Shown here piece after piece: positions 5,600 to 63,309 of a DNA stretch of 64,000 nucleotides. The first letter of the stretch is position 1; each line of letters opens with the position of its first letter. The notes below the pieces were generated by a model. It had not been told where the DNA came from. It worked only from the letters and a program-made list of their open reading frames with translations, and did not search any database. Source of the stretch: Macrostomum lignano (lineage: Eukaryota). The position numbers and the translations under genes were made by a program. The stretch spans positions 62,001 to 126,000 of the forward strand of contig NIVC01001203.1 in the NCBI GenBank assembly GCA_002269645.1, read 5' to 3'.

Positions 5600-7690
5600 A
5601 GGCTACCTGAGAGATAATCTCCTTTAAGCTACCTGAGAGATAATCCCCTTTAAGCTACCTGAGAGATAATCCCCTATAAGCTACCTGAGAGATAATCCCC
5701 TATATGCTACCTGAAAGATAATCCCCTATAAGCTACCTGAGAGATAATCCCCTATAAGCTACCTGAGAGATAATCCTCTATAAGCTACCTGAGAGATAAT
5801 CCCCTATAAGCTACCTGAGAGATAATCCCCTATAAGCTACCTGAGAGATAATCCCCTATAAGCTACCTGAGAGATAATCCCCTATAAGCTACCTGAGAGA
5901 TAATCTCCTTTAAGCAACCTGAGAGATAATCCCCTATAAGCTACCTGAGAGATAATCCCCTATAAGCTACCTGAGAGATAATCTCCTTTAAGCAACCTGA
6001 GAGATAATCCCCTATAAGCTACCTGAGAGATAATCCCCTTTAAGCTACCTGATAGATAATCCCCTTTAAGCAACCTGAGAGATAATCCCCTATAAGCTAC
6101 CTGAGAGATAATCCCCTTTAAGCTACCTGATAGATAATCCCCTTTAAGCTACCTGAGAGATAATCCCCTATAAGCTACCTGAGAGATAATCCCCTTTAAG
6201 CTACCTGATAGATAATCCCCTTTAAGCTATCTGAGAGATAATCCCCTATAAGCTACCTGAGAGATAATCCCCTTTAAGCTATCTGAGAGATAATCCCCTA
6301 TAAGCTACCTGAGAGATAATCCTCTATGAGCTACCTGAGAGATAATCCCCTATAAGCTACCTGAGAGATAATCTTCTATAAGCTACCTGAGAGATAATCC
6401 TCTATAAGCTACCTGAGAGATAATCCTCTATGAGCTACCTGAGAGATAATCCCCTATAAGCTATCTGAGAGATAATCTTCTATAAGCTACCTGAGAGATA
6501 ATCCCCTATAAGCTACCTAAGAGATAATCCCCTATAAGCTACCTGAGAGTTAATTCCCTATAAGCTACCTGAGAGATAATCCCTATAAGCTACCTAAGAG
6601 ATAATCCCCTATAAGCTACCTGAGAGATAATCCCCTATAAGCTACCTGACAGATAATCCCCTTTAAGCTACCTGAGAGATAATCCTTTATAAGCTACCTG
6701 AGAGATAATCCTCTATAAGCTACCTGAGATAATCCCCTATAAGCTACCTGAGAGTTAATCCCCTATAGGCTACCTGAGAGATAATCCCCTTTAAGCTACC
6801 TGAGAGATAATCCCCTATAAGCTTCCTGAGAGATAATCCCCTTTAAGCTACCTGAGAGATAATCCCCTATAAGCTACCTGATAGATAATCCCCTATAAGC
6901 TACCTGAGAGATAATCCCCTTTAAGCTACCTGAGAGATAATCCTCTATAAGCTACCTGAGAGATAATCCTCTATAAGCTACCTGAGAGATAATTCTCTAT
7001 AAGCTACCTAAGAGATAATCCTCTATAAGCTACCTGAGATAATCCCCTATAAGCTACCTGAGAGTAAATCCCCTATAGGCTACCTGAGAGATAATCCCCT
7101 ATAAGCTACCTGAGAGATAATCCCCTATAAGCTACCTGAGAGATAATCCCCTATGAGCTACCTGAGAGATAATCCCCTATAAGCTACCTGAGAGATAATC
7201 CTCTATAAGCTACCTGAAAGATAATCTCTTTAAGCTACCTGAGAGATAATCCCCTATAAGCTACCTGAGAGATAATCCTCTATAAGCTATCTGAGAGATA
7301 ATCCCCTATAAGCTACCTGAGAGATAATCCCCAATGAGCTACCTGAGAGATAATCCCCAATGAGCTACCTGAGAGATAATCCCCTATAAGCTACCTGAGA
7401 GATAATCCCCTATAAGCTACCTAAGAGATAATCCCCTATAAGCTACCTGAGAGATAATCCCCTATAAGCTACCTGAGAGATAATCCCCTATAAGTTACCT
7501 AAGAGATAATCCTCTATAAGCTACCTAAGAGATAATCCCATATAAGCTACCTAAGAGATAATCCCCTATAAGCTACCTGAGAGATAATTCTCTATAAGCT
7601 ACCTAAGAGATAATCCTCTATAAGCTACCTGAGATAATCCCCTATAAGCTAGCTACCTGAGAGTTAATCCCCTATAAGCTACCTAGGGGA
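5600..7690. repeat. 2.1-kb minisatellite, 26-bp unit (AAGCTACCTGAGAGATAATCCCCTAT)
   Basis: Long tandem array downstream of the EPG5 stop. Confidence 0.97.
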
Positions 7691-8524
7691 TAATCTCTAA
7701 GCTACGTGAGGTGATCAGTGCTAAAAAACGCGTCATTCCAAATGTTCTCGTATTTTCGCAACCTCTACTAACAGTAGTTTCAATGTGTATTTTAAGATAG
7801 ATTTTCCTGCGTGTAAATAAAATGCCAATAAATACATTATTAGTATCGTGTGTATCAATAATGTATTTTACTTGACTCCCAGTAATTATTGATTTTACAA
7901 TCGATTGTACATCATTCATTAATAATAATTCACCTCCTGCTTTCCCTGCGTTGGTCTTTCTTGTAATTAAACAAACCAAAAACAAAGGAAAATTATATGA
8001 AAATTGAAAACTTCATTTTATTGTCACAATTTGATTCTCACTTGGGTTTGCATCTGAGTTTGTTTGATCATAAAAAATGTTGCTATTTTCTTAAACAGAT
8101 TATTTTTGGTACTTTTAACCCTAAATTACGAGCAACCAATTCATTCTAGCATGCGTATTATTTATTAATTATTTAATTGTTTAATTGTGTTTCATTTTCA
8201 GTTGGAATCTTAACTCGAATTTCTTCATCATGTTGGGTTTAATTTTTCTTTTGTCCTGGCCTGCGTTTTTTGAGGAACCTTGAAGATTTTATAATATATA
8301 ATTACGGTAATAAAACTGTTAACAACAGTAATTATGCGTTTGTTTATCCAGATTTTAAAAAAATTGGCTTCCGCTTAATAAAGTGCATGCTGTACTTGGT
8401 GTTGACTTTGGTGTTCGTTTAGTTGTTTTAAATAAACATCTTAGGCTAGACTGAATTTTTCTACATGTCTACATGTCTACATGTCTAAATCTACATGTAC
8501 ATGTGTAATTGAGACCAAGAGAAT

Positions 8525-9150
8525 ATTTAAACTGATGGCGCCAAACTCAAACTGATGGCGCCAAACTCAAACTGATGGTGCTAAACTCAAACTGATGGCG
8601 CCAAACTCCATATACTCGTAGTAGCGCCAGAAACTCAATATATTGGCGCCAAACTGAAACTGATGGTGCCAAACTCAAACTGATGGCGCCAAACTGAAAC
8701 TGATGGCGCCAAACTGAAACTGATGGCGCCAAACTCAAACTGATGGCGCCAAACTGAAGCTGATGGCGCCAAACTCAAACTGATGGTGCCAAACTGAAAC
8801 TGATGGCGCCAAACTGAAACTGATGGCGCCAAACTCAAACTGATGGCGCCAAACTGAAACTGATGGCGCCAAACTAAAACTGATGGCGCCAAACTCAAAC
8901 TGATGGCGCCAAACTCAAACTGATGGCGCTAGGCGCTAAACTCAATACAGTGGCGCCAAATTCAATACAGTGGCGCTAAACTCAATACAGTGGCGCCAAA
9001 CTCAATACTACAGTTGCGCCAAACTCAATACAGTGGCGCCAAACTCAATACAGTGGCGCTAAACTCAATACAGTAGCGCCAAACTCAATACAATGGCGCC
9101 AAACTCAAAACAGTAGCGCCAAACTCAAACTGATGGTGCCAAAAACTCAA
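8525..9150. repeat. Minisatellite, ~20-bp unit (AAACTGATGGCGCCAAACTC) with GGCGCC core
   Basis: Tandem array; right part changes to AATACAGTGGCGCCAAACTC. Confidence 0.93.
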
Positions 9151-11492: not shown

Positions 11493-13339
11493 ATGGAAGC
11501 TCTTTGGAGAATCCTGACAGCGATTGCAGCAGTTCTGATGCAGACCTTCGGCAGGTCCACAGGCCAAAGCGAGGGCCTTGATGGCACTGAGCAGGAGATC
11601 CGGGAAGCCGTTATGTCCGAAAATGAAGCAAAAATTTCACGATACCTGCAGAAACCTTCTAACGTTGATAGGCTCTTCAGCATCAATGAGACGACATTCT
11701 CACCGCTTCACATTGCGTGTGCAATGGGAAATGTCAAAATTGTCGAAATGTTCATTCGAGCCCAAGCTGACGTCAATCTTCAACAAAACACCGGCGAGTC
11801 ACCTCTCTACATTGCATCAGAGTATGGTCACCACCAAGTTGTGAGCTCACTCATCAAAGCACAAGCTGACGTCAATCTTCAACAAATCCAAGGCGTTTCA
11901 CCTCTCAACATTGCATCACAGAATGGTCACCACCAAGTTGTGAGCTCACTCATCAAAGCACAAGCTGACGTCAATCTTCAAGAAGTCAATGGCTGCTCAC
12001 CTCTCTACATTGCATCACAGAATTGTCACCACCAAGTTGTGAGCTCACTCATCAAAGCACAAGCTGACGTCAATCTTCAAGAAGTCAATGGCTGCTCACC
12101 TCTCTACATTGCATCACAGAATGGTTACCACCAAGTTGTGAGCTCACTCATCAAAGCACAAGCTGACGTCAATCTTCAACAAGTCGATGGCTGCTCACCT
12201 CTCTACATTGCATCACAGAATGGTCACCACCAAGTTGTGAGCTCACTCATCAAGGCACAAGCTGACGTCAATCTTCAACAAGTCGATGGCTGCTCACCTC
12301 TCTACATTGCATCACAGAATGGTCACCACCAAGTTGTGAGCTCACTCATCAAAGCACAAGCTGACGTCAATCTTCAACAAGTCGATGGCTGCTCGCCTCT
12401 CTACATTGCATCACAGAAGGGTCACCAGCAAGTTGTGAGCTCACTCATCAAAGCACAAGCTGACGTCAATCTTCAAGGAGTCGATGGCTGCTCACCTCTC
12501 TACATTGCATCACACCAAGGTCACCACCAAGTTGTGAGCTCACTCATCAAAGCACAAGCTGACGTCAATCTTCGAGAAGTCGATGGCTGCTCACCTCACT
12601 ACATTGCATCACAGAATGGTCACCACCAAGTTGTGAGCTCACTCATCAAGGCAAAAGCTGACGTCAATCTTCAACAAATCCGAGGCGCTTCACCTCTCTA
12701 CATTGCATCACAGAATGGTCACTACCAAGTTGTGAGCTCACTCATCAAGGCAAAAGCTGACGTCAATCTTCAACAAATCCGAGGCGCTTCACCTCTCTAC
12801 ATTGCATCACAGAATGGTCACCACCAAGTTGTGAGCACACTCATCAAAGCACAAGCTGACATCAATCTTCAAGAAGTCGATGGCTGCTCACCTCTCTACA
12901 TTGCATCACATTTTGGTCACCACCAAGTTGTGAGCTCACTCATCAAGGCACAAGCTGACGTCAATCTTCAACAAGTCGATGGCTGCTCGCCTCTCTACAT
13001 TGCATCACAGAAGGGTCACCAGCAAGTTGTGAGCTCACTCATCAAAGCACAAGCTGACGTGAATCTTCAACGAAACACTGGCTCGTCACCTCTCTACATT
13101 GCATCACAGAATGGTCACCACCAAGTTGTGAACTCACTCATCAAAGCACAAGCTGACGTCAATCTTCAAGAAGTCGATGGCTGCTCACCTCTCTACATTG
13201 CATCACAGAATGATCACCACCAAGTTGTGAGCTCATTCATCAAAGCACAAGGTGACGCCAATCTTGAGAATATTCGCAGTCCAGAAGTGACTAAAATGTC
13301 ATCTGCTTTGGAAAAACCGCTAAAAGAGTCAGATTTTGG
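11493..13339 (+). CDS. Exon 1 of ankyrin-repeat cGAS-like receptor: N-terminal segment plus 15 near-identical 33-aa ankyrin repeats
   Basis: ORF 11493-13343; repeats ADVNLQxxxGxSPLYIASxxGHHQVVSSLIKAQ at 11766-13250 (99-bp period). The apparent stop TAG lies inside a donor-like site TTTGG|GTAGGC (GT at 13340), phase 2, matching the acceptor at 14847. Ankyrin identity is certain; the splice link is inferred. Confidence 0.9.
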
Positions 13340-13423
13340 GTAGGCTTCAATAATTAGATTTGCTTTTTTCTCTTCTACCTTTTGCTTGATTTTTAACAGT
13401 AGGAACACCAAGCCATTTTCCGC

Positions 13424-14130
13424 CCGTCGAACTACCAAGGGGGGGGGGCGAACTCCCTCTCCTGACAATTTTTTTTGCTGCGTCGTATTGGAGCAACGGA
13501 GGCACACGAAATTCCAGAACACGGGCTAACTTTTTGTTGCGCACCTTCTCAAACAAGAATCAAGTCGTCAGCCCTGCGGACCGTCGAGATATTCGACGTA
13601 TCTGCCAGAATTACGCTATTCTGCCAGGACCGCGTCAGGGTGATGACGGAATGCTCGAGAGAAGACCAGCTGAGGATATCTAGCAGTTGAGTTTTGCCCA
13701 CTGTCGAGGCTTGATCAGCGAAACTTGAGAAATTCGTATCAGGGTGTCCATAGTCACTTGGTGCCACCTGTTGAAGGTCCAGAAGCTCTGCCTGGGTAAA
13801 GGCTAGTGACCAACGAAGTCAGAGCTGATGCAGACACATGTGGTCGACGTGCTGATGAAATTTGGAGACTTGGCAAGGCTGCACTGAGGCGCAGTGCTGA
13901 TTGGCGCACAGGGGTGTACTGAATACACTGGCGCTTATGGGAAAATCCGACCTTCTGGCAGAATCGTCGAATATCTGGACGGTGTGGAGGTCTGGCGACT
14001 TGATTCTTGTTTAAGAAGGTGCCGAAACAAAAGTTAGCCCGTGTTCTTGAATTTCGTGTGCCTCCGTTGCTCCAATACGGCGCAGCAAAAAATTGTCAGG
14101 GAGGATTCCCCCCTCTTGGTAGTTCAACTG
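13424..14130. mobile_element. Non-autonomous DNA transposon (MITE), ~700 bp, with ~190-bp imperfect TIRs, in intron 1 of the ANK-cGLR gene
   Basis: 13424-~13610 is the reverse complement of ~13953-14130 (e.g. GAACTACCAAG...CCTGACAATTTTTT...GCAACGGAGGCACACGAAATT). No coding capacity; TSD not clear. Confidence 0.8.
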
Positions 14131-14847
14131 TTAATATCATTTTTTTAGTTTTGTGGATTTGACAGTTGGTGAAATTTTAAAAGCAAGCGGGCTTAGGAGG
14201 CTGGTTTGAAATTTTAACAGTAACAGCACACAAACAGTGAATGGCGAAAGAGACCAGAAGGCTGAGTGAAGATGGTTTTGGCATTGCTGATTTAAGCACA
14301 CTGGTAGGAAAAATGCTGGCTTCTACACTTTGCTGACTAGCCATTTGTCGAGGGGGAGTTAGCTATCTCGCCACTCGACTAGGTAACTTTCCGTTTTACT
14401 CAGACCGCTCAGACCAAGACCGTTCGCCAAATAAAGTTGAACCAACCGTACTACAGACACTTCATGGACATTCAGTCGAAATGGGACATCCAAAATTGTG
14501 TTCCGGACACTGTCTGAATCCTATAGACACTTTCCCTTGGGTCATGGACACTCAGCCAGGAGTCAATACGCTCATCCAATGGACCCACCTCCAGCCTGCC
14601 AGCCAGACTTTACCTCCATTACTCTGAAACTAAAATCTTAAGTCCTCGTCCCTAAGTCAATCCTTTTCCTCTTACTCGCACAAGTTAGATAATTTCTGCA
14701 CTGACAGTTTTAGCTAACTTACCGCATTTTTGACCAACTGCTTACAATCAACTCATGCACCGTTCGGGACTGCTGCCCATGCTGCACAAATTTGTCAATT
14801 AACCTTTCTAGAAACGCACGTTTTTTTACAAAAAACTCACATTTTAG

Positions 14848-15191
14848 ATGCAGTCCCAGCGACTCCGAGCTAAGCGAGCAGCTGTACTCAGCACTGGAGC
14901 AGTCAGGCTTCACCGAATCCCGAGCCGCATTGCAGAGCGCGGCTGCCGATGTCCTGCAGCAGATTCTGAGAAGTCGACTGAGTTGCCGTTCATATTTTGT
15001 CGTCGGCAGCTACTCAGAAGGCTGGGGCAACAGCCTGACGACACTGGACGGCAGAACTGACGCCAATTCCGACATTGATGTCATGGATTTGATTCCCGGC
15101 CGAGAATACCACCAGAGAGGTCTGTGCGAGTGCGATGGAGCTCCGGAGCAGCACGAGTTGGTGAACGGGCACATTCAGTGTCCAGGATTCG
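14848..15191 (+). CDS. Exon 2 of ANK-cGLR: nucleotidyltransferase N-lobe of Mab-21/cGAS-like domain
   Basis: Acceptor CATTTTAG at 14847, donor G|GTGAGT at 15192. Motif VVGSYSEGW...NSDIDVM = hGS..EG...SDxD metal-binding signature of Mab-21/cGLR enzymes. Confidence 0.88.
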
Positions 15192-15632
15192 GTGAGTTCT
15201 CTCTTGGCGAGTGAGATGGTCAGTTAGTGCTGTTAGTGATTGCTGGAGATTCTGGCAGTGCAGACGTTTGCTTGTTGTGTGCAAAGCATTGGTGAAGAAA
15301 ATATTCTGTATGCTCAGTAAGCAGATCTGAACAAGAGCCTGACTGTCATCCTTCAGTCTGATTTAATTCCAACGCACATATGCATGCGCATTTAAATATG
15401 TAAATGTATTGAATTTGCTAGGTGTTAAGTAGCTATGCTGTACCCACAAAATAGAAAACTGTATTAACAACATGCATTTAGTCTATATCTTATTTAGTAG
15501 CTTATAGAACATGGGCAACAAAAATTAATTTTCATCATTATTACTCGTTTCCCAATCAGCCCAAAGCATCACTGCAAAGACTCAAACCTTAAGTCAAATT
15601 TTGCCCAATCGGGAACCGAATCGTTTTTACAG

Positions 15633-17077
15633 CCTCCAATCCTGCCCAGCGGACACCCGGATGCACGCTGAGGCCAGCGCTGGACAGTGTCTCTGCATGC
15701 CGTCTCTGCCACTACCCGCCCATCGCGCCGCTGCTGCCAAACCGCGTCTCCAACATCCCCCATCAGGTGCTGGAGGCACTCCGGAAGGTTCTCACCTCCG
15801 CCTCATCGCCCTGTCACGTGGTGCACGCAGCCTCTCCTGATCGAGGAGGCGAAGAGCTCCGCGTGAGCACCAGCTTCCTGGAGAACCGGATGCTGCGAAG
15901 TCTCACTACCCTGCAAGGTCAACTGTTCGTCACACTCAAATACCTGGTCAAGAAGGTCATCTGTCACAAGAATGGCTTCAATCAGCAAGGCTTGAAGTCC
16001 TACCACGTGAAGACCATCACCTTCCGAATGGTGGATGAGACGCCGGTCGAGCAGTGGAAGAAGGAGAACCTCGTGAGTCTCACGAGACAGTCGCTGCAGA
16101 TGCTGCTCGACTGTGTGGAGAAGAGCCGAGAGCAGGACAGACAAACACCTGACACACCTGACCGATCTCGGGGTCGCATCATGAACCATTTCTTTCTCAG
16201 CGATGCGGCCATCTACCTCAAGGGTGCGGACAAGGAGAGAGCGGACCAGCATTTGGACGGCATCATGAGCACACTGAGAACAGTAATCGATCGGCTGCCC
16301 CAACTGCTGCAGCAGTTCATCGGCAGTCTCAGACCTGTGAGCGACTCAGGCACATTCTACTTCCACCCGTTCCAAATCCTGCCGGATCTGAGGCCGATGT
16401 CCCTCACGAAGTCCAGTGCTCTCGAGTACTATCAGATCTACGACGTGGTGAGAGAGTGTCTGGTGCGTCTCTCGCACAGTGACTGCAGCCAGCGATCTCA
16501 GGAGTCGCTCACAGAGCTGATTGCCAGACTGCCAGACTGCGCCCTCTCAGCACGAGAGGCTCTCAGAGCGCTGGCTTGCCTGAAGTTCGGCTACCGAGAA
16601 ACTGCAGAGAGAGTCGTGAGCTCGTGCTCAGGTCACTCGGTGAGCAGAGGCATCGCTTGGTCTCGTGAGAAGTCGGCGACTGAAGCGACTGTGGAGTTCG
16701 TGATGCGGCATCTGAGCAGCCGCGACTCGGCGTGGAAGTTTTGCTTTGAGTTTGACCAGCAACCGAAACTCGAGTTCTTGACAGGAGCTCTGAGGGAGTG
16801 CTTTCCCCTCCGGTTGTCAGGCAGTGCTGACCATTTCTACATGAACTTTGATGCTCTGCTGTGGGCTCTGCGGCTCGAGCTGCGGACTGATCGAGAAGCG
16901 CGCGCTCAGGACTGGATCCGGGATGTGGCTGAGAGACAGGACTCGGATGAGCAGGAGCTGCTGGTTGCCGCTTTGAATTCTTTAAATCCGGAGCAGTTTC
17001 AGGAAATAGTAAAGAAGCTGAAGATGATGAGAGCAGATCTTCACAACTGGCTGAAGGCATATCAGAAGCACATGTAA
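15633..17077 (+). CDS. Exon 3 of ANK-cGLR: remainder of NTase core, Mab-21 C-terminal helical domain and C-terminal extension
   Basis: Acceptor TTTTTACAG at 15632 (phase 1, in frame with ORF 15767-17077; upstream in-frame TAA at 15590). Motifs LDSVSACRLCHYP (candidate third Asp), LRVSTSFLENRML, LKYLVK, LKSYHVKTITFRM, QWKKENL, MNHFFL are typical of Mab-21 proteins. Confidence 0.88.
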
Positions 17078-22026: not shown

Positions 22027-23205
22027 TTATAAACGCGCCGAAAAAGCCGTCGAGTCTGAGCCTTGTTCGTAAGCGTCTACACGCTCGATGACTGACGGCT
22101 CCGTATTTTCTTTTGCTACACGCTGTAGTTCTCCCTCATTGAAGTAACCCTCTAGTGCGCTATTTCCGTCTTCCGGATTCTCTAGTTTCTACGACGCTGC
22201 TCGGCGAGGATTCGTAGCACGGATCCGAAACACTGTGTTGCTCCACACTGTCGAATAGCCCTTCTCGAAGGCACCCCGCTGTCGTGCGATTATTACCCAG
22301 TCTCCTACCTTTAGTGTTGATAGAGGCTGCTGCAAGGCATCATTCTCTATAATCTCAGACCCGATGATTCCCTGTAGACGCGGATCCACCGCCGTGTTGT
22401 GAAGACTCTGACCAAACAGCGCCCGGTGAGGGCTTGAGTTCAAATTTCGTTCCATTTGGGGTAGAATGTCATACCAGCGTTCCAGGTTTCGAGCCCAAAA
22501 ATAACGGCTGAGTCGCTCTTTCAGAGTACGGATTAACCTTTCAGCGATCGCAGCCTTGTAATAGCTTTGGCTAACAAAAAAGCGTTCACCCGCCCGTTTT
22601 AGTACAGCTTGAGTTTCACGCCCTAGGAACTCCTTTCCCGCGTCGCCCTGAAGATAGAGAGGTCGGAAGCCTTCAAGAAACAGATTTTCAAGTTCGGCGC
22701 CCACCTCTTTATCAGTTTTCGTTCGTAGAGGTCGCAGACGTACTTCGCAAGTGAAACAATCAATCAAAACGAGGATGTAGCGGTATCCCTTGTTATTTGA
22801 CTTGTATTGAGGGAGATCCGCCAGGTCGATTTGGAATTGAAAACTAGGGATATGTGGTACACCAATTCTGCGGGTTTTGAATATTCGTTTAGTTTTGCGA
22901 AACAGGTTATATTCTTTGGTCTCCCGGGCCCATTCGTCTACGATTTCTGCCGCTCGTTTAGATGCTAGTGACGGAAACTGGGTTTTAACATGTCTTAATA
23001 GCTGTTGCTTACTTCCTGCAAAAGCAGTAGGGCGGTCCAAATCGTAAAATTGTCTGTCTAAGAAGTTCTTGACATCTAGCGAGTTGTTATTTCTAGTCCG
23101 TTCTTTTGCGTTTTCGGACAGCTGATGGCTCTGGTGTTTCGCCTTTCGCATAGGAGGTCTCTTTTTCAGTGCCATCGGTTTTTGTATCGGTGATTCCTCC
23201 CACAC
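22027..23205 (-). pseudogene. Maverick retroviral-type (rve) DDE integrase with one premature stop near the C-terminus
   Basis: FYDLDRPTAFAG, FQIDLADL (D), LQGDAGKEF (D), KAAIAERLIRTLK (E). TAG at 22189-22191 is followed in frame by KLENPEDGNSALEGYFNEGELQRV, the usual Polinton integrase tail, to a stop at 22027-22029. Confidence 0.92.
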
Positions 23206-29764: not shown

Positions 29765-30450
29765 ATCCTGTCTCTTGGTGGGTGCCCCTGTCTCTTGGTG
29801 GCCGCCCCTTGTCTCTCGGTGGCCGCCCCCTTGTCTCTCGGTGGCCGCCCCCTTGTCTCTCGGTGGCCGCCCCCTTGTCTCTCGGTGGCCGCCCCCCTGT
29901 CTCTTGGTGACCACCCCCTTGTCTCTTGGTGGGTGCCCCTGTCTCTTGGTGACCACCCCCTTGTCTCTTGGTGACCACCCCCTTGTCTCTTGGTGGGTGC
30001 CCCTGTCTCTTGGTGACCACCCCCTTGTCTCTTGGTGACCACCCCCTTGTCTCTTGGTGACCACCCCCTTGTCTCTTGGTGACCACCCCCTTGTCTCTTG
30101 GTGACCACCCCCTTGTCTCTTGGTGACCACCCCCTTGTCTCTTGGTGACCACCCCCTTGTCTCTTGGTGACCACCCCCTTGTCTCTTGGTGACCACCCCC
30201 TTGTCTCTTGGTGACCACCCCCTTGTCTCTTGGTGACCACCCCCTTGTCTCTTGGTGACCACCCCCTTGTCTCTTGGTGGGTGCCCCTGTCTCTTGGTGA
30301 CCACCCCCTTGTCTCTTGGTGACCACCCCCTTGTCTCTTGGTGGGTGCCCCTGTCTCTTGGTGGGTGCCCCTTGTCTCTTGGTGGCGGCCCCCTGTCTCT
30401 TGGTGGCCGCCGGCCCCTTGTCTCTTGGTGGCCGCCCCCCTGTCTCTTAG
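29765..30450. repeat. Minisatellite, ~22-bp unit (CCACCCCCTTGTCTCTTGGTGA)
   Basis: Tandem array; explains five overlapping repetitive ORFs. Confidence 0.95.
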
Positions 30451-30804
30451 TGGGCGTCCCTACCACTATCCCCTGTGCAGGTGAATGTCAGGTACAAGGG
30501 GTGTCAAAAGTTGAGGTCCTGTCATTGTCAAGCTTGGTCATCTCATTCTTCATTGATAATAATTTGATAGCAATTTTGTGAGGCGCGACTAAAAGAGCAA
30601 TTCAAGCCAAAATTAACAGACACCAGCAAGATGTGCATGCGACCTTATTAAATGCTTTTAATTCAGTGCAGATGCACTTGCTGCAGCTCCTTCACTTCAC
30701 AATCTCGAGACTTCTCATATTGTCAAAAAGCCCTTATGGTTACTTTCCAAAATCGTTCAAAACTCAAACGTGAGTCAGTGACTTCAAACTTCATTCATGA
30801 TTCG

Positions 30805-31915
30805 GTTTACCTGGATGATTTTCTGGTTGCGGCCGAGAGCGAGAAAGAGTGTATGGATGCTCTGAAAGAGCTGATTAAGCTGGTTCGCCAGTTAGGTTTT
30901 GGTGTCAATTGGAACAAAGTGGTTGAACCTACGCAATGCTTGGTGTATCTCGGTGTGAAGATTGATACTGTCCGTGGAGTTCTTAGTGTGCCGGCGGAAA
31001 AGTGTGAGGAAATGCGCACCACACTGCTTAACTTTTCGCAGCGCAGGCGTCTCTCGAAACGACAGCTTTCGTCGCTTTGTGGCAAGCTCAGCTGGGTCGT
31101 CCAGGTGGTGCACGCTGGGAGTTGCTTCCTAAGACCCCTGTTCGACCTGCTTAATGCCCTGGAATAGCCACATCACAAAGTGCGTGTGTCCGCTGACACT
31201 GCGTATTTTACTCTGGTGGCGAGGTGCCCTTCTGAAGCTGCCTGATTTTCAGCTTTGGAGAAGTTGCACAAACGGCTGGATCATCGAAACCGATGCGAGC
31301 AGTGCTGGTGGCGGAGCCATTTTGCGCAATGGTAGCGGTATGGTGGATTGGCTGTACGTCAATTGGGATCTGGATGCTGGAGGAAAGTTTAAAGACAAGC
31401 ATATCACGTACAAAGAAGCTATTGTTCCGCTACTGGCTATGGTTCGCTGGGGTGCCTTTTTAAATGACAGTTCGGTCGTGGTCTACTCCGACTCTAGTGC
31501 GGCTGTTGGCATGATTAACAAGGGTTGCTGTCGGTAGCCTGAGTTGCAGCCGCTGTTCCAGACTGCCATGCTCATTGCTGTTAGGCGTGGGGTTGAGGTG
31601 CGCGCTTTTCATGTGCCTGGCTGGTACCACGTCTTTGCGGACCCGTGCTCTAGGCTGCACGCCGTGGACAAAATGCGCGATTTTTTATTTCGGGTGTATG
31701 GCTCTGTTCACTGCTGTTTTAACGAGATCGCTAGCCATGCTTTCTGCCCTGCTGCCTCCGTTTTTCTCATTTTACAGGCCCTCCGCGCCAGACTTCCGAC
31801 CGCCTCAACAAGCGTTGCGCGTTTATCCTGGGCAATGCCTACGCGCCCCGCACGAAGCGGAGTTACCGGTCACAGCTCGCGTCCTGGCTGCAATTTTGCA
31901 ATTCCCGGCACCTGA
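30805..31915 (+). pseudogene. RT / RNase H of the Ngaro-type element (truncated; frameshift near 31160, stop at 31535-31537)
   Basis: ORF pieces 30652-31167, 31154-31537 and 31544-31915; only the RT C-terminal half from YLDD is present. Confidence 0.85.
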
Positions 31916-34264: not shown

Positions 34265-34915
34265 TGCTTGTCACATTCTCCCCTCTCCTTGTCACCCTCT
34301 CCCTTCTCCTTGTCACCTCCCCTCTCCTTGTCACCCTCTCCCCTCTCCTTGTCACCCTCTCCCTTCTCCTTGTCACCTCCCCTCTCCTTGTCACCCTCTC
34401 CCTTCTCCTTGTCACCTCCCCTCTCCTTGTCACCCTCTCCCTTCTCCTTGTCACCCTCTCCCTTCTCCTTGTCACCTCCCCTCTCCTTGTCACCCTCTCC
34501 CCTCTCCTTGTCACCTCCCCTCTCCTTGTCACCCTCTCCCTTCTCCTTGTCACCCTCTCCCCTCTCCTTGTCACCTCCCCTCTCCTTGTCACCCTCTCCC
34601 TTCTCCTTGTCACCTCCCCTCTCCTTGTCACCCTCTCCCCTCTCCTTGTCACCTCCCCTCTCCTTGTCACCCTCTCCCTTCTCCTTGTCACCCTCTCCCT
34701 TCTCCTTGTCACCTCCCCTCTCCTTGTCACCCTCTCCCTTCTCCTTGTCACCTCCCCTCTCCTTGTCACCCTCTCCCCTCTCCTTGTCACCTCCCCTCTC
34801 CTTGTCACCCTCTCCCTTCTCCTTGTCACCCTCTCCCTTCTCCTTGTCACCTCCCCTCTCCTTGTCACCCTCTCCCCTCTCCTTGTCACCTCCCCTCTCC
34901 TTGTCACCCTCTCCC
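34265..34915. repeat. Pyrimidine-rich minisatellite, 18/21-bp units (CTCCTTGTCACCCTCTCCCCT)
   Basis: Tandem array; explains the GDKERG, SPLLVTL and SLSP pseudo-ORFs. Confidence 0.95.
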
Positions 34916-35499
34916 AAAAAAATAACAAATACCGAAACAAAAGACAAAGAGTTTACATTTTCACCCGCAAATGTTTTTAGTTGTCAAATAGTTGTTATTA
35001 CAACTTCGAAAACTGACTAAAATAGTACATGGATAAAGCATATATAGAGAAATACAATAGTAAAAACAGGTTATATAAAACAGTACATATTCGGTATTTA
35101 CAAGCAAGCAGAATTAATTTTAATAACTTTTATACAAGTAAATTGTATAAATTGCTACTGGCACGGAAAGTCAAAGTTTATCAAGCAATGAGCTGCATTA
35201 TAAGTAGATGAATGCAAAATTAATTTGTTTAACGACTAAATATTCAATATTTAAGCAATTAGCAGCTAAAAGTTTAAGGTATTAGTGTAAGTATAAGGTA
35301 TTAGTTTATAAGTGTAAGGTATATAAAGGTATCAGGTGTCTGCACTACTGCAGGCTTATCTACTGTACCAGCTTCCCTGTTCTTCTCATCATATTCTCTC
35401 TACTCTCCATCTCCCTTTTCTCACTCGTATCATCTCTCGACCTCTTATTTAATCTTACTCTCTCCTCTCCTCTCCCTTCTCTCCCCCTCACCCTCTCCC

Positions 35500-36290
35500 A
35501 TCTCCTCACCCTCTCCTCTCCTTGTCACCCTCTTCTCTTTCCTTGTCACATCACATTATCCCTCTCTTTGTCATCCTATCCCCTCTCCTTGTCACCCTCT
35601 CCCCTCTCCTTGTCACATTCTCCCCTCTCCTTGTCACCCTCTCCCCTCTCCTTGTCACATTCTCCCCTGTCTTTGTAACATTCTCCCCTCTCCTTGTCAC
35701 CTTCTCCCCTCTCCTTGTCACCCTCTCCCCTCTCCTTGTCACCTCCCCTCTCCTTGTCACCTTCTCCCCTCTCCTTGTCACCTTCTCCCCTCTCCTTGTC
35801 ACCTCCCCTCTCCTTGTCACTTTCTCCCTTCTCCTTGTCACATTCTCCCCTCTCCTTGTCACCTTCTCCCCTCTCCTTGTCACCTTCTCCCCTCTCCTTG
35901 TCACATTCTCCCCCCTCCTTGACACCTTCTCCCCTCTCCTTGTCATCCTCTCCCCTCTCCTTGTCACCTCCCCTCTCCTTGTCACCTTCTCCCCTCTCCT
36001 TGTCACCTCCCCTCTCCTTGTCACTTTCTCCCTTCTCCTTGTCACATTCTCCCCTCTCCTTGTCACCTTCTCCCCTCTCCTTGTCACCTTCTCCCGTCTC
36101 CTTGTCACCTTCTCCCCTCTCCTTGTCACATTCTCCCCCTCCTTGACACCTTCTCCCCTCTCCCCGTCACCTTCTCCCCTCTCCTTGTCACCTTCTCCCC
36201 TCTCCCTGTCACATTCTCCCCTCTCCCCGTCACCCTCTCCCCTCTCCCCGTCACATTCTCTCCTCTCCTTGTCACCCTCTCCCCTCCACT
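35500..36290. repeat. Second array of the same CTCCTTGTCAC minisatellite family
   Basis: Same unit as 34265-34915, separated by an AT-rich spacer. Confidence 0.93.
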
Positions 36291-39891: not shown

Positions 39892-41235
39892 ATGCCCGCA
39901 CGCGCAACCGGGCCCTCCGCTGAAGCCCGACGCACCCGCAACCAACGCCGCAACGAGCGGCGACGGCGACTACGGGGTACTGCGGGCCGGCCACCGGCGG
40001 AAGGGGAACCTAGGGAGGGCGAGGCTGCTGTTGGGCCGAAAGGAACCACAGCAACCCCTGCCCCCCAGGATACAACCCCCGCTGGTGAGCCACCCAGTAT
40101 ACCTGCTACAAGCGCGGCCGGGCCTTCGGGAACCGCCGCCACCAACTACGCCTCAAAGGTCAAGCTCCAACCGGCGGTCATCGTCTTCGGGGAAGAGCAG
40201 GACCTCACGGCCGACGAGCTCGACAGTGCCTGGCGCACCATCGATGCTGCGCTCATCGACCAGCTCCTGGCGGGCCGCCCTGTGAGCGTGGTCAAGTCTG
40301 CCAAGACCGACGGCTGCATCTTCATCTGGTGCAGCTCGGAGGAGAGCAGCCGCAATCTACGCGAGCTTCTGCCAAAGCTGAACTGGCCCAAGAAGCTCGG
40401 CAAGCTCGTCTTCGCCAGCGAGGGCGAACGACAGAAGACCCAGCGCTTTCGCGTCTGGATCCCGGCCGGCAGTGCCATTAAGTCCGGAGATCAGCTTAGG
40501 CAAATATTGCTAAAGCTGCACCCCGACCTTAAGGTCAACGGGCTCCTACACCACGCCACTTCCCGCAAGGAGAAGGGGGCTACGGTGATCCTAGGGCTCT
40601 CTGATGACTGGGCTAAGCGCTTGCCGCCTAAGTCCACAATTCATATTGGTCTGACTCAGCTGACCATCCTCCGTTGCGAGGAGCGGAAAGCTGATGAAGC
40701 CAAGAATGCCAAAGCTTCCGAAACCGGAACTGGGGCCCAGGCTCCTCCGGCAAAGAAGCCGAGGCAAACGGCCGATCCTATGCCCGGTAAGGCAGTTCGC
40801 GCTGCTGAAACCGGAAATCGCAATCGCAGACCCGCCAGGAGCACCCGGAGGTCCGGCCTGATCCAGCGCGCGCTGGACCAGGCCAAGAACCTTCGTGCGC
40901 ATCGTGAGCGGGCCCGCGCTTCTCGCGCTCCACCCCAACAGCCAGAAGGCCAGACTCTAAGCGGGGAGGCTCCGACCGACTGGTTCGAGTCTGTGACTCA
41001 CCAGGAGGCTGGCGCCACCCGCATCGACCTGACCGACGAGGCAGAGGGGACGGGCAGTGACAGCACCGAAGCACGCAGGAGAGGCGACGGTAACGTCCAC
41101 GCTGGGCTCACGTCCGCGGAGGACTCCACAGCCACCCTAACTGCTGAGGACGCTGAAACTCCCATGGAGGTCTGCGGGTCACCCACCACTGAAAAGGAGG
41201 AGGATGACCTGCTCAACGATTCCCCAACTGCGTGA
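39892..41235 (+). CDS. LINE ORF1 (DUF4780-like nucleic-acid-binding protein)
   Basis: 447-aa ORF directly upstream of ORF2; IFIWCSSEESSRNLRELLPKLNW...RFRVWIP resembles the DUF4780 ORF1 of LOA-type elements. Confidence 0.75.
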   Translation: MPARATGPSAEARRTRNQRRNERRRRLRGTAGRPPAEGEPREGEAAVGPKGTTATPAPQDTTPAGEPPSIPATSAAGPSGTAATNYASKVKLQPAVIVFGEEQDLTADELDSAWRTIDAALIDQLLAGRPVSVVKSAKTDGCIFIWCSSEESSRNLRELLPKLNWPKKLGKLVFASEGERQKTQRFRVWIPAGSAIKSGDQLRQILLKLHPDLKVNGLLHHATSRKEKGATVILGLSDDWAKRLPPKSTIHIGLTQLTILRCEERKADEAKNAKASETGTGAQAPPAKKPRQTADPMPGKAVRAAETGNRNRRPARSTRRSGLIQRALDQAKNLRAHRERARASRAPPQQPEGQTLSGEAPTDWFESVTHQEAGATRIDLTDEAEGTGSDSTEARRRGDGNVHAGLTSAEDSTATLTAEDAETPMEVCGSPTTEKEEDDLLNDSPTA

Positions 41236-41237
41236 TA

Positions 41238-44200
41238 ATGATCAGCAACCAGGGAATCCATTGCCTGCAGATTAATCTGCAGCACTGCGTCGCAGCCTCG
41301 GTCAACCTTATGCGTTACGCCGAGCTCGACAAGCCGGGGCTCATCCTCGTCCAGGAACCCTGGACTCTCAGAGGTAAGCCTCAAAACGCCCCTGCTGGCT
41401 ACAATTGTTTTTATACTTACCCTCGCGAGGCCAACCAGCCTCCCAGAGCTTGCATCTTTGCGAGCAAAACGCTCAGTGCGTGGCTCAGATCGGACCTGTC
41501 CAACAGGGACATCTGCGTCATCCAATCCGAGGACCTTCTTCCTGGGAAGACCACCCTCATTGCCTCGGTTTACCTACCAGGCGATGCTGCGGTCGTCCCC
41601 AGAGCCCTCGCTACGCTGGTAGAGCTCTGCTCTGCCAAAAACTACGAGCTCATGGTTGCCGGCGACATCAACGCCCACCACACTCACTGGGGCAGCACTG
41701 GCATTAATCAGAGAGGCGAAGACCTCCTAGCCTACGTTGCCTCTACGACCCTCGAGTTCTGCAACTCTGGGTCCACCCCTACCTTTGACAACGGACGGTG
41801 GTCGGAGGTGATCGACGCTACGCTCGCAACGCCCAGACTCTACCAGAGTATTGGGGCGTGGCGGGTGCTTCCAGTGTCCTCACTATCGGATCACAAGTTC
41901 ATCTCCTTCAACCTAATGGCCGCGCGTAGCGCAACTCGTGTTATGTGGAGACGGAACGCCAGAAATACTGATTGGGAAACCTTCGGGCTCGCCCTGAAGG
42001 AATTCCATCGGTCTCCTGGCCAACCATTCACGATCACGTCGTGCCGAGAGGCGGATGAGTGCGCGACTGTTTTGACAGAGACGCTAACCGCCGCCTTTGA
42101 GGCGTCCTGCCCTTTAAAAGCCTATAAAGGGAAAAAATCGGCGCCGTGGTGGAATCCCGAGCTCGGCAACCTCCGTCGCAGGGCTAAGAGACTCCACCGC
42201 AGAGCAACTAAAACTAAGAGCCCTGCAGACCAAACCGCCTATCATGAAGCAATTCATGAGTTTAAAAGGCAGGTTAGGAATGCAAAGGCTCAAAAATGGC
42301 GACAATACTGTGAGGAGCTAGAGGGCTCACGCCCCACCTCCAGAGTTGTGAAAGCGCTCACGCTGGACAAAATGTCTAAGCTCTCCTCGGTCAAACGCAC
42401 CGACGGTACGTCCACGGACAACCCAGGGGAAACGCTTGATGTAATGCTCACTGCGTTTTTCCCTAACGAGCCAGCTAACCAGACCACTCCGGATCACTCG
42501 GAGGGAGGTCACGCGCTGGCTGCATCTATCATCACGGAGGACCGCATTGTGAGAGCGGCAAATTCCTTCAAGCCTTTCAAAGCCCCAGGACCCGACGGCA
42601 TTGTACCGGCCCTTCTAAGAGAGGCGGTTAAATGCCCAGGCTTCCTGCGCAAACTTTGCAGCCTTCTTCGGGCATGCATCACGCTTGGTTATGTCCCGCA
42701 GGCATGGACCGAGGCAAAGGTGATCTTTATCCCTAAGCCAGGCCGCCCGGACTACCATTCTATCAAATCCTTCAGACCGATCAGCTTGACCTCCTCCCTG
42801 GTCAAGCTGATGGAGAGACTGGTGCTTTGGCGCCTTCTCTCTGTTGAGCTGAAGAACAAACCTCTCAGCGAGAACCAGCACGCTTTTCGGGCGGGTCGCT
42901 CCACTGAAAGCGCGCTGCACGTCCTGGTCGATAAACTCGAGAAGGCCGTGCTTGGTAGTGGCTTTGCTCTGGGGATCTTCCTGGACATCATTGGCGCCTT
43001 CGATAACGTCCTCTTTGAGGCGTTCCGAAGAGCTCTTTGTGAGAGGCTAACGCACTCACATCTCACCAGATGGATCATGTACATGATCAGCCATCGCACG
43101 GCCACCGCCAGTCTGCTGGGCTACCAGAGGACGGTCCCCGTCTGCAAAGGTAGCCCGCAAGGTGGGGTGCTGTCTCCAGTTCTCTGGAATATGGTCATCG
43201 ATGAGCTCCTCCGGGATGTTCGGCCTGACCCCATTCTGAAAGTTGGATATGCGGACGATGTCACCGCGGTGGCATCTGGTCCGTCCCCTGATACCCTCAG
43301 GGACCTTCTTCAGAACTTCATCTACGCTGCTGAGCAATGGGCGGACCGCTGTGGTTTAAGGCTCTCTGAGACTAAGACCGCAGCGATCATGTTCACCAGC
43401 AGGACCAAGTGGCAGATTCGGCCGCTCACGCTTTACGGAAGGGAAATCCCCTTCTGCAAGCAGACTAAATGTCTGGGTATTACCCTGGACCACAGGCTGA
43501 ACTGGTCTCCCCACGTTCAAACAAAAGCCAAAAAGGCCTTCGCAGTCCTCGCGCAATTGCGCAGGGCCGTCGGCACCACCTGGGGGCTCACCCCCAAGCG
43601 CCTCTGGTGGATCTACACTGCAATGGTTAGGCCCGCTATCTCGTATGGCGGCCTGATCTGGGCTAGCGCCCTGCAGATAAAGACCTGTCTAGAGGCTCTC
43701 AGGAGAGCGCAAGGGCGCGCTTGTCGCACGATCATGAGCGCCCCTCCGTCTGCTCCTTACGATGGCCTCAACGCCTTCCTCAACATTCCTCCGCTGGACA
43801 TCTTTGTCCGCAGGGAAGCGGCTAAGACTGCCCGCCGTCTAGCTGACGCTGGCATTCGAATCCAGCCCCATAGGGCCATGGCTAAGCGCAAGCTTCTGCC
43901 CCACGCTGACCTCTGCCTCAAGGACTTGAGAGACAGCGGCGGGCTCCACGTCCTATCTGACGGCGAACCCCGCACTCTCAACCTCTTTCAGCGCTACAAG
44001 GTCACCATCCCCTCTAGGGATGCTGCCAATGACCACTGGAATTTCCAGGAGGTCCATTGCTACACGGACGGATCCATCAAAGACGGTCGCGCCGGCTTTG
44101 GGGTCTGCATCATCATCAACGGCCGCGTAATTGCCACGCATGCCCAGCACACTGGTAGACTCTCCACAGTCTTCCAGAACGAAGTCCTTGCCATCAGCTC

Positions 44201-44941
44201 TTGCGCTGCAGAGCTAAACGCCAAGGTTACGAGAGGAAAGACTATTGTCATCCACTCCGACAGCCAAGCGGCCTTACAGGCCCTTTGCCACACCACAACG
44301 AACTCCCGGACAGTCGCCGACTGCGCCCGGCAGCTCAACCTCCTGGCCAGAAGCAATACTGTCAGGCTGAAGTGGATCCCAGGGCACGCAGGGTTTCCGG
44401 GGAACGAGCTGGCAGACACCCTCGCCAAGAGGGGCGGCTCTGGCTCTTTTTTCGGCCCTGCCCCCTGGTCCCTATGCCCTTGACAGTCATCAATCGTCAG
44501 ATCGACGACTGGGCTGACTCCCTCCACAGGGACAGATGGGCGGGCACCCAAAACTGCCGGCAATCTCGTGCCGCGGTTCCTTGCCCGTCTCACAGGCTCA
44601 GAAACATCCTTCTGAACCAGAATCGGAAGGATATTCGAGCCCTTGTCATGACCCTTACCGGCCATGGCTACCTCGCCAGGCACTGCTTCCTCCGAGGCGA
44701 CCTCGAGAGCGAAATTTGCCCCTTTTGCGAGTGCGACAATGAAGATGCTCAGCACTTTGTCTGTCACTGCCCTTTCTTTAACAGAGACCGGCTACGCTAC
44801 CTCGGGCCGAACCCGTCCATTGACGAGGTTTGCCAGCCCGACAGCATCCCACGGCTCATCCAGTTCCTTCGGGCGACTAGACGAGCCAGTTTCTTCCCAA
44901 CGGAAGATCACGCTGCAGGACGGACCGGCGGACCACCCTGA
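41238..44941 (+). CDS. LINE ORF2: AP endonuclease, reverse transcriptase, RNase H and CCHC finger; one frameshift near 44461-44465
   Basis: LQINLQH..LVQEPW, GDINAHH, SDH (APE); KAPGPDGI, FRPISL, QHAFRAGRST, FLDIIGAFD, GSPQGGVLSP, YADD (RT); YTDGS, E, SDSQAAL, WIPGHAG..GNELAD (RNase H). The tail TLTGHG...CPFC...HFVCHCP is in the shifted frame (ORF 44201-44941). Confidence 0.93.
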
Positions 44942-45061
44942 CCGGCCCCACGCCTCTGCCTGTCTGCGGGCCTTCAGGGGCTAGCGGAATGGGCGACCCT
45001 CGCCTCCCCGCTGTGTCTACGGACCACCCTGCAGCTAAGTCTAAGCGGCGCAGATTTCAAA

Positions 45062-45300
45062 TTCAGTGGCGCCAATCTAAAATTGAGTGGCCCCTAATGT
45101 AAAATTGAGTGGCGCCAATCTAAAATTGAGTGGCGCCTAATGTAAAATTGAGTGGCGCCAATCTAAAATTTAGTGGCGCCTAATGTAAAATTAAGTGGCG
45201 CCAATCAAAAATTCAGTGGCGCCTAATGTAAAATTGAGTGGCGCCAATCTAAAATTTAGTGGCGCCAATTAAAAATTCAGTGGCGCCAATCTAAAATATA
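45062..45300. repeat. GGCGCC-core minisatellite (AGTGGCGCCAATCTAAAATTG) directly after the LINE TSD
   Basis: Tandem array read directly. Confidence 0.9.
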
Positions 45301-45835
45301 CTGGTGTCGCCAGTTTGAAATTCAGCTGTGAATCAATGCAAACGCGTCCTATAACTATATACTACTGTTGCGTCAAGTAGTAAGCCAAAACTACAGTCAG
45401 ACAATTAAAATACTCAAACAGCTTCTACTTGGCTGGACAGAAAAGAAACTGCATAATTCGACAAAAATGCTAAGGTTGTATGCTCTGTGAGATATTGAGA
45501 GGGAGGGAGAGAAGGAGAGAGAGGTAGAGAGAAGAGAGCCTTAATGAGAGATTTTAGTGAGAATATAAATGTACACCAAAAACAAAATATGTATGGAGAA
45601 GGGGGTTCCTGCTGGCCTCAGTGTATTTGCCTGTCTGAATGTCCCTCACTCAGTGTCTCATACAGACAACTATAACTTTAACCTTCTCACCCCAGTCTTA
45701 ACCTACCTTCGCCTCTCAAGCTGCTTTGCTACATTCGGTGTTCAAAGCAACGTACACTCATCCATTCACCTGTACAGTACTCGCGTTTTCCAAGCTCGAA
45801 CTCTCTCCCCCCCCCCCCCAGCGCCTGCCAAGCAA

Positions 45836-45849
45836 TTCACCATGGTAAC
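45836..45849. promoter_or_regulatory. RFX X-box-like motif upstream of the first ADGB start
   Basis: TTCACCATGGTAAC (minus strand GTTACCATGGTGAA); one perfect half-site of GTNRCC-n-RGYAAC. Confidence 0.4.
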
Positions 45850-45971
45850 GGCGTAGTAGCGAGTCTTTCGCATAGAAATATATGGCATTTAAAGCCTAAA
45901 ATCTTCGAAAAGCAACGGGGCGCTGTTTTTGTTGATTAAAAAAAGCAAAAATCAAATCTCAGGTACTGCAG

Positions 45972-57900: not shown

Positions 57901-58409
57901 CTGCTCCCTTCACTCTGCTCCCTTCACTCTGCTCCCTTCACTCTGCTCCCTTCACTCTGCTCCCTTCACTCTGCTCCCTTCACTCTGCTCCCTTCACTCT
58001 GCTCCCTTCACTCTGCTCCCTTCATTCTGCTCCCTTCACTCTGCTCCCTTCACTCTGCTCCCTTCACTCTGCTCCCTTCACTCTGCTCCCTTCCCTCTGC
58101 TCCCTTCACTCTGCTCCCTTCACTCTGCTCCCTTCACTCTGCTCCCTTCACTCTGCTCCCTTCACTCTGCTCCCTTCACTCTGCTCCCTTCACTCTGCTC
58201 CCTTCACTCTGCTCCCTTCACTCTGCTCCCTTCACTCTGCTCCCTTCACTCTGCTCCCTTCACTCTGCTCCCTTCACTCTGCTCCCTTCACTCTGCTCCC
58301 TTCACTCTGCTCCCTTCACTCTGCTCCCTTCACTCTGCTCCCTTCACTCTGCTCCCTTCACTCTGCTCCCTTCACTCTGTTTTCTTCACTCTCCTCCCTT
58401 CAATGGGCT

Positions 58410-58449
<40 letters not shown>

Positions 58450-63251: not shown

Positions 63252-63309
63252 GTAAGTGCATTTTGTAGTTTTGGCCATAGACACCTGTTTGGCAACTATA
63301 TGACGATAA

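Follow-up and report, generated by a model that had tools for sequence, protein, structure and literature searches.

Nucleic acids are the only known ligands of cGAS-like receptors (cGLRs), and most of the ~3000 cGLRs that are predicted in animals are orphans. Some cGLRs are fused to ankyrin (ANK) or tetratricopeptide repeat (TPR) modules (Li et al., 2023, Cell; Fig. 1C, S2A; bioRxiv 10.1101/2023.02.22.529553 = PMC9980059). The same study showed ANK-cGLRs of Stylophora pistillata and gave, in its Table S2, PAA accessions of Macrostomum lignano that carry Ank_2; five cGLRs of M. lignano were cloned and entered its screen (Table S3, rows 89-93) (PMC9980059). The ANK-cGLR architecture was already catalogued in 2023, M. 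lignano members included, and the family is functionally uncharacterised, none of its members having a known ligand or product. In the literature searched, no main-text treatment of Macrostomum together with cGAS, STING, Mab21 or cGLR was found. ANK- and TPR-fused cGLRs are obvious candidates for sensing other ligands. Here we describe such a gene from M. lignano. It lies at positions 11493-17077, on the forward strand, of a 64,000-nucleotide stretch of contig NIVC01001203.1 (contig positions 62,001-126,000), which is called the window and whose coordinates are used throughout. Comparison with related sequences makes it very probable that this region is one three-exon gene of the Macrostomum ANK-cGLR family. 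This assessment applies to the gene structure and the family assignment jointly, and not to the signalling mechanism that is discussed below.

Gene Structure and Evidence for the Exon Join

Exon 1 (11493..13339) provides the start codon and encodes a hydrophobic N-terminal peptide, MEALWRILTAIAAVLMQTFG, followed by the ankyrin array and a short linker. The N-terminal portion of the nucleotidyltransferase (NTase) core, including its spine helix, is encoded by exon 2 (14848..15191), while the remaining NTase core, the Mab-21 helix bundle and a C-terminal domain are encoded by exon 3 (15633..17077), which ends with TAA at 17075-17077. Intron 1 (13340..14847) is in phase 2 (gtaggc...ttttag), and intron 2 (15192..15632) is in phase 1 (gtgagt...ttacag) and lies at the conserved site PG[FY]|A. 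All four splice sites are canonical, with GT-AG at both introns: the 3' end of exon 1 reads ...GATTTTGG|gtaggc (TTTGG|gtaggc; phase-2 donor GG|gtaggc), the borders of exon 2 are cattttag|ATGCAGT...GGATTCG|gtgagt, and exon 3 starts as ttttacag|CCTCC.... The three exons joined amount to 3636 nt, or 1211 codons with zero internal stops, in which the split codons are GG|A (Gly, phase 2) at intron 1 and G|CC (Ala, phase 1) at intron 2. The gene is present as a single copy within the 64-kb window.

A preliminary description of this DNA had proposed the same exon coordinates, the total of 3636 nt and the uninterrupted frame of 1211 aa, all of which proved exact. It had also placed the stop codon of the ankyrin open reading frame (ORF) inside a phase-2 donor that matches a phase-2 acceptor. 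Indeed, the TAG that closes the 616-aa ankyrin ORF occupies 13341-13343, within the donor of intron 1, and the split codon is GG|A. Its further claim that the three exons make up one gene for ANK and Mab-21 is upheld by the colinearity of paralogs, the conserved intron phases and an enzyme frame without a start codon, each of which is detailed below.

The enzyme frame of exon 2 has no ATG ahead of the catalytic motif, the first Met coming after D-I-D, which calls for a coding exon further upstream; the ATG found at 14848 belongs to an unrelated frame of 70 codons. When the 1211-aa product was compared with annotated M. lignano proteins by BLASTP, single colinear alignments spanned both junctions. 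Residues 16-1193 aligned with PAA87022.1 (54.6% identity, 1187 columns), residues 7-1205 with PAA61028.1 (48% identity) and residues 536-1192 with A0A1I8HGT1 (P0002; 82.9% identity). The high-scoring segment pairs with PAA87022.1 and PAA61028.1 were single and covered >95% of the length, and the colinear annotated relatives are 1146-1168 aa long. The P0002 model, whose enzyme half shows 88% identity, also runs across this exon 1/2 junction, with ...EKPPKEPEFE|CSLSDSELSEQ in P0002 vs ...EKPLKESDFG|CSPSDSELSEQ in the window product.

The introns were compared by exact mapping of three annotated paralogs onto their loci, L001, L002 and L003. A phase-2 intron at the ANK/enzyme boundary was found in L002 (GG|gtgagt...cag|G) and L003 (AG|gtgagc...cag|A), and the phase-1 intron at PG[FY]|A is kept in L001, L002 and L003. 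Taken together, the comparative support for the exon join is strong. The equivalent of intron 1 measures ~105 nt in L002 and ~580 nt in L003. Much of the unusual length of intron 1 in the window gene is due to an insertion that resembles a miniature inverted-repeat transposable element (MITE), with 140-nt inverted arms at 13471-13610 and 13953-14092 that are 89% complementary and 342 nt apart.

The N-terminal peptide (11493-11555, residues 1-21) is near-unchanged in P0042, where it is joined directly to the enzyme part. P0008 and P0040 begin with more distant versions of it, and another such version precedes the truncated P0006 model. It contains the most hydrophobic 19-mer of the protein, with a Kyte-Doolittle mean of 1.29. 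A membrane anchor was not called, as this hydropathy is below the transmembrane threshold. The conserved hydrophobic or amphipathic peptide may nevertheless have a role in membrane association. P0008 starts with MGFLQRLFSAVAACC, a possible context for myristoylation or palmitoylation.

Some public models of the paralogs look imperfect. The P0006 model (PAA, 890 aa; L002:4284-6000) starts inside its array, with an ORF resembling the N-terminal peptide and more ANK repeats found 1.7 kb upstream. P0008 (871 aa; L003:6365-7364) keeps ~5 repeats vs a genomic array of 10 units that match at 93%, and an "intron" of the model falls inside the array. P0042, an M. lignano representative of 1099 aa, is 86% identical in its enzyme half and has no ankyrin array; the ~560 low-complexity residues that precede its N-terminal peptide look like an artefact of the gene model. 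The ANK-less P0042 suggests a possible ANK-skipping isoform.

The Nucleotidyltransferase Half and the C-terminal Domain

The enzyme half contains a GS activation-loop motif (15005-15010; G669/S670), an Asp-Ile-Asp motif (15071-15079; D691/D693) and a third catalytic Asp (15683-15685; D748). Li et al. (2023) recognised cGLRs by the active-site criterion h[QT]GS X8-20 [DE]h[DE]h X50-90 h[DE]h, together with a looser final criterion, G[S/G] plus [ED]h[ED] X50-90 [ED]. The motif found in the window, VVGS-X20-DIDV-X52-LDS, conforms to the cGLR criterion, and to its looser form fully. The active-site residues are kept in most paralogs and lost in a few (i.e., P0020, P0022 and P0033). In addition, Pfam matched Mab-21_C (PF20266) at 15932-16126 with 25.2 bits, the cut-off being 24.1.

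A profile of full-length paralogs that was searched against PDB gave ankyrin proteins only, because the ANK columns dominated, and the search was rerun with eight trimmed enzyme halves. The trimmed profile matched cGAS with an E-value of ~7e-8 (profile positions 187-299), Sp-cGLR1 with 0.006 and MAB21L1 with 0.93, and its hhalign comparison with bivalve Mab-21 gave a probability of 98% over positions 135-300. An AlphaFold2 model of the enzyme half, built with 19 family sequences, had a predicted local distance difference test score (pLDDT) of 81.2 and a predicted template modelling score (pTM) of 0.85. The top 39 Foldseek matches of this model in PDB were cGAS (human, mouse and pig), Sp-cGLR1, MB21D2 and MAB21L1, with E-values down to 1e-6 and a probability of 1.0. 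The alignments covered ~370-400 columns at template modelling (TM) scores of 0.5-0.58 per target; MiD51 was also matched, and bacterial CD-NTases scored lower. The model thus predicts structural homology of the enzyme half to cGAS and the CD-NTases, and by the criteria of sequence motif and fold this half is a predicted cGLR. The calculated isoelectric point (pI) of the enzyme core is near-neutral (6.9), and that of the whole protein is 6.4.

Between the D-x-D motif and the third Asp is a conserved H-x4-C-x-C-x12-H cluster (15110-15172; H88, C93, C95 and H108 of the enzyme half), in which H88 and C93 do not vary among the trimmed family sequences that were aligned. This cluster may be a zinc site; its position differs from that of the zinc thumb of cGAS.

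The Mab-21 helix bundle is followed by a C-terminal domain of ~250 aa (16322..17074; residues 962-1211). When modelled alone with AlphaFold2, it was mostly helical with a small sheet (pLDDT 80.3, pTM 0.83). It is conserved across the Macrostomum family, with the motifs SRGIxW, DSAWKFCF, YVNFDALL and DWIRDVA, the bivalve relatives lack it, and profile matches in other phyla end at about position 333, before this domain. Pfam gave no match to it, and Foldseek gave no significant PDB fold, the best E-value being 0.57 among weak TPR-like matches. Comparison with a bivalve cGLR-TPR protein revealed no detectable relation (hhalign probability 0.14). A degenerate TPR, considered as an identity for the domain, is unsupported by these Foldseek and hhalign values.

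These results bear on the domain account of the preliminary description, which recognised the ANK and enzyme halves correctly and overlooked the family-specific domain of 250 residues. The GS...DID signature and the third Asp in LDS, which it had read from the sequence, are present. Among the domain matches it had suggested looking for, PF20266 (25.2 bits) and Ank were recovered and PF03281 was unmatched. The predicted fold is cGAS-like with the Asp triad intact, and the lack of an NTase fold that it had named as grounds for rejection was not seen.

The Ankyrin Array

Pfam, Tandem Repeats Finder (TRF) and an analysis of register placed an array of 16 ankyrin repeats, each of 33 aa (99 nt), at 11694..13277. 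Pfam matched Ank_2 with an E-value of 3.9e-169 and Ank with 1.5e-114 in 16 stretches, identifying the units as ankyrin repeats, and TRF reported a period of 99, 15.2 copies and 92% matches. At the DNA level the internal units are 85-99% identical, and the repeats are young. Repeat number varies widely in the family, since the array of L003 has 10 units (93% matching), the repeats of L002 are old and diverged, and P0042 has none.

The variable positions of the repeat are 2, 10, 11 and 31-33. We take these six to be mostly the target-binding positions that are randomised in designed ankyrin repeat proteins (DARPins), a mapping made from the DARPin consensus. The 14 internal units contain 31 distinct non-synonymous codon variants vs 3 synonymous ones. 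Eighteen of the 31 fall on the six binding-face positions (binomial p=8e-7 against a uniform spread, from counts that are phylogenetically non-independent). The pattern is suggestive of positive selection. We infer that the ankyrin array is the sensing module, with which both the clustering of non-synonymous variants on the binding face and the near-neutral pI of the core fit; cGLRs that sense dsDNA or dsRNA have a higher pI (Li et al., 2023; PMC9980059).

Family Membership and Distribution

All close homologs of the enzyme half are from M. lignano, and many of them carry ANK and PF20266 in one polypeptide. An exhaustive profile search returned 1297 relatives, with 91 cluster representatives at E<=1e-30. 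Many of them measure 1100-1400 aa and carry the enzyme part C-terminally, and those looked up were GenBank BOX15_Mlig proteins, all of them from M. lignano. The window gene shares with this family a colinear architecture, intron positions and the N-terminal peptide, and such comparison places it in a large expansion of ANK-cGLR genes that is specific to Macrostomum. The paralogous ANK-cGLRs for which the preliminary description had suggested a search are numerous, with many M. lignano proteins combining ANK and Mab-21. The databases searched held no protein identical or near-identical to the product of this locus. The best matches reached 92% in the enzyme half and 60% in the ANK half, and a search with the ANK exon found no M. 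lignano protein that was >60% identical. Outside the flatworms, the closest relatives come from bivalves: Mab-21 proteins that have both PF03281 and PF20266, in some cases with TPRs at the C-terminus.

The closest paralog is P0001 at locus L001 (NIVC01001460.1:51843-73988), with 92% aa identity in the enzyme half and 95% nt identity in exon 3. DNA similarity to L001 begins at 14746, thus including ~100 nt of intron 1, covers exons 2-3 and ends 17 nt before the stop codon of the window gene; the last residues of the two proteins therefore differ. From its sequence, L001/P0001 looks like a 5'-truncated duplicate.

Among further family members, which include P0037 (1346 aa) and P0015/P0048, some are annotated as tandem double enzymes with two complete Mab-21 halves and a short ANK segment between them, and others form a distinct subfamily with different N-terminal repeats. 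The double enzymes may be real tandem fusions similar to OAS2/3, or merged neighbouring genes. A fragment of 347 aa, P0032, which is 41% identical to the window product, came from a 1065-nt contig of an NCBI metagenome-assembled genome named "Kangiellaceae bacterium". Its source is almost certainly a eukaryote (flatworm-like) that contaminated a marine metagenome bin.

Genomic Surroundings

A large part of the 64 kb is taken up by about 25 separate minisatellite arrays, each with 25-80 copies of a unit of 14-26 nt. Examples are found at 465-1093, 1723-2384, 5602-7695, 8529-9143, 29785-30452 and 34267-36286, and further ones at 45059-46623, 47331-49463, 50090-52681, 53180-56662, 57602-61038 and 63309-64000. 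Several units that look unrelated have a common TTTGGCGCC / GGCGCCA core. The minisatellite arrays account for blocks of extreme GC skew and for most of the long spurious ORFs. An apparently intact retrotransposon without long terminal repeats (non-LTR) lies at 39892-44483 on the forward strand. Its ORF1 (447 aa, no Pfam match) overlaps ORF2 (1083 aa), which contains endonuclease (Exo_endo_phos), reverse transcriptase and RNase H domains. Fragments of reverse transcriptase and integrase are found at 30652-31167 (forward strand) and 22189-23205 (reverse strand).

Alternative Explanations

Several observations weigh against the reading of this locus as a functional ANK-cGLR gene, and they are considered here with the alternatives on which they bear. 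The exon join was inferred by comparison and homology rather than from RNA, and an AATAAA at ~14431, within intron 1, would allow an isoform with ANK alone. The region might even hold two transcription units: an ankyrin-only protein ending at the TAG of 13341-13343, and a Mab-21 gene with another first exon or a trans-spliced leader. This arrangement would agree with the coincidence of the ORF stop with the donor, as unspliced read-through would yield the 616-aa ANK protein, with the AATAAA, and with L001, which has exons 2-3, a 5'-partial gene model and no ANK exon within 10 kb upstream. It is, however, very improbable. The enzyme frame has no ATG before GS/DID, the ATG at 14848 opening another frame of 70 aa; the P0002 model crosses exactly the exon 1/2 junction; annotated paralogs of fused architecture keep the phase-2 and phase-1 introns; and proteins of 1146-1168 aa align colinearly with the product over its whole extent. 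The ANK-less P0001/L001 does imply that ANK fusion is not universal in the family. It is also the partner in an estimate of constraint, a dN/dS of 0.81 that comes from few differences (22 synonymous and 58 non-synonymous) and a probably truncated copy, and that leaves constraint weak or undemonstrated for one copy of the pair. The gene model could be correct and the gene itself a young, unexpressed or decaying duplicate without a function of its own, in a region rich in repeats. The surrounding minisatellites, long interspersed nuclear element (LINE) and integrase fragments, the MITE-like element in intron 1 and the absence of an identical protein from the protein sets searched are in keeping with such a duplicate, as is the dN/dS. 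We nevertheless consider it improbable: the 1211 codons contain no stop or frameshift, the splice sites are canonical in all four cases, the transposon has inserted within an intron and the catalytic residues are all intact, though they are lost in P0020, P0022 and P0033. Moreover, the weak constraint may come from decay of the 5'-truncated P0001 and not of the window copy.

The remaining points concern what the protein would do. The residue before GS is Val instead of Q/T, the spacer between GS and DxD is at the upper limit of 20, and PF03281, the family of the NTase core, was unmatched in the Pfam search, the core being recognised solely by motif and fold. No family member from M. lignano is reported to be enzymatically active, and the 15 active enzymes that Li et al. 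(2023) selected include none of the five NTase-only constructs from M. lignano, which have no entry in the active-enzyme column. That outcome is compatible with a missing activator or ANK part, and equally with inactivity. Other flatworms are listed without cGLR and without STING, and Macrostomum is not listed (Table S5 of Li et al., 2023; PMC9980059); the M. lignano entries elsewhere in their tables appear to be an exception. The protein might be functional without cyclic-nucleotide signalling, either as a scaffold or adaptor similar to MiD49/51, MAB21L1 or crustacean Mab21, or as an enzyme that yields something else, for instance linear 2'-5' oligomers (OAS-like) or nucleotidylated proteins. 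Besides the unmatched PF03281 and the M. lignano constructs missing from the selected enzymes, the Foldseek matches to MAB21L1 and MiD51 point in this direction. So does a precedent from crustaceans, whose Mab21 proteins are reported to activate IKK-epsilon and to signal outside nucleic-acid sensing (PMC12928593). We regard such a role as unlikely. The full G-S / D-x-D / D set is kept across most of a large, fast-evolving family, and such conservation would be unexpected unless catalysis mattered. Furthermore, it is the active enzymes cGAS and Sp-cGLR1 that match best in structure and profile.

Proposed Mechanism and Significance

If the gene encodes a ligand-activated receptor, the enzyme would be held inactive at rest, and a ligand that is probably not a nucleic acid (a protein or another macromolecule) would bind the concave face of the ankyrin solenoid. 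Binding would relieve or reorder the activation loop, after which the NTase would synthesise a nucleotide second messenger. By analogy this would be a cyclic di- or oligonucleotide, which a downstream receptor would detect. For the C-terminal domain, a part in regulation, in oligomerisation or in the docking of effectors may be considered. We put this mechanism forward tentatively, as one that is only slightly more doubtful than probable. M. lignano is a flatworm model with established RNA interference and transgenesis, and the sensor hypothesis is therefore testable in this species.

More broadly, the Macrostomum ANK-cGLRs might be a germline-encoded, rapidly diversifying receptor repertoire. 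Recognition would be the task of a homogenised ankyrin solenoid of variable copy number, with diversifying selection acting on its binding face; a nucleotide second messenger would carry the signal, and an undescribed C-terminal fold would couple the enzyme to a non-STING pathway. As a whole this extension is, on balance, doubtful. Were it true, it would be the first instance of repeat-based sensing, comparable to that of NOD-like receptors (NLRs) or variable lymphocyte receptors (VLRs), linked to signalling of the cGAS type, its ligands would be proteins and not nucleic acids, and the repertoire would be that of a phylum otherwise reported without cGLRs.

Comparison with Known Systems

Like vertebrate cGAS, Drosophila cGLR1, Sp-cGLR1 and Cv-cGLR1, the enzyme half is predicted to adopt a bilobed NTase and helix-bundle fold and has a GS activation loop and an Asp triad. 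Whereas cGAS and the characterised invertebrate cGLRs sense dsDNA or dsRNA on a basic enzyme surface and have no repeat array, the window protein has a core pI of ~6.9, an ANK solenoid of 528 aa before the enzyme and a domain of 250 aa after it; its identity to these enzymes is 12-17%. It also differs from proteins of the MAB21L1/2 type, which have a degenerate active site, no appended domains and high conservation across animals. Its own active site is complete, it carries ANK and C-terminal appendages, its family is lineage-specific and divergent, and the PDB profile E-value is 0.93 for MAB21L1 vs 7e-8 for cGAS.

A likeness of another kind is to fungal receptors of the signal transduction ATPases with numerous domains (STAND)/NLR class, which, in work attributed to Paoletti and Saupe and to Dyrka et al. 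in 2014, are said to have highly conserved internal ANK, WD or TPR repeats. As in those receptors, the repeat units are near-identical in DNA, variation falls on the binding surface and repeat number varies among paralogs, which is the signature of a fast-diversifying recognition module. The fungal proteins, in contrast, have a NACHT/NB-ARC ATPase and N-terminal effector domains and no nucleotidyltransferase, and the likeness does not extend to common descent of the whole protein. The bivalve cGLR-TPR proteins (e.g., Sinanodonta KAL3855470.1 and Mercenaria XP_053407825.1), as the nearest non-flatworm relatives, do combine a Mab-21 enzyme with a repeat module, as the window protein does, but their repeats are TPRs and lie C-terminal to the enzyme.

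The closest match is to the ANK-cGLRs of Li et al. (2023), which likewise join a cGAS-like NTase with a complete motif to ankyrin repeats, and whose M. lignano entries belong to the same expansion. The enzyme half of the window protein is 32-37% identical (E-values of 1e-52 to 1e-69) to four of the five screened M. lignano constructs, the four that were compared, and 48-57% identical to annotated full-length M. lignano members. The gain over that catalogue is incremental, consisting of a corrected gene model and testable detail and not of a new type of system. The literature searched describes neither the way in which the repeats vary, nor the plasticity of the array in copy number, nor the C-terminal domain. 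Unlike the arrays of the catalogued ANK-cGLRs, that of the window gene is longer and more homogeneous, with 16 units. The locus offers a clean, intact example of the architecture with an unusually regular array, in which the variable positions mark the probable binding face.

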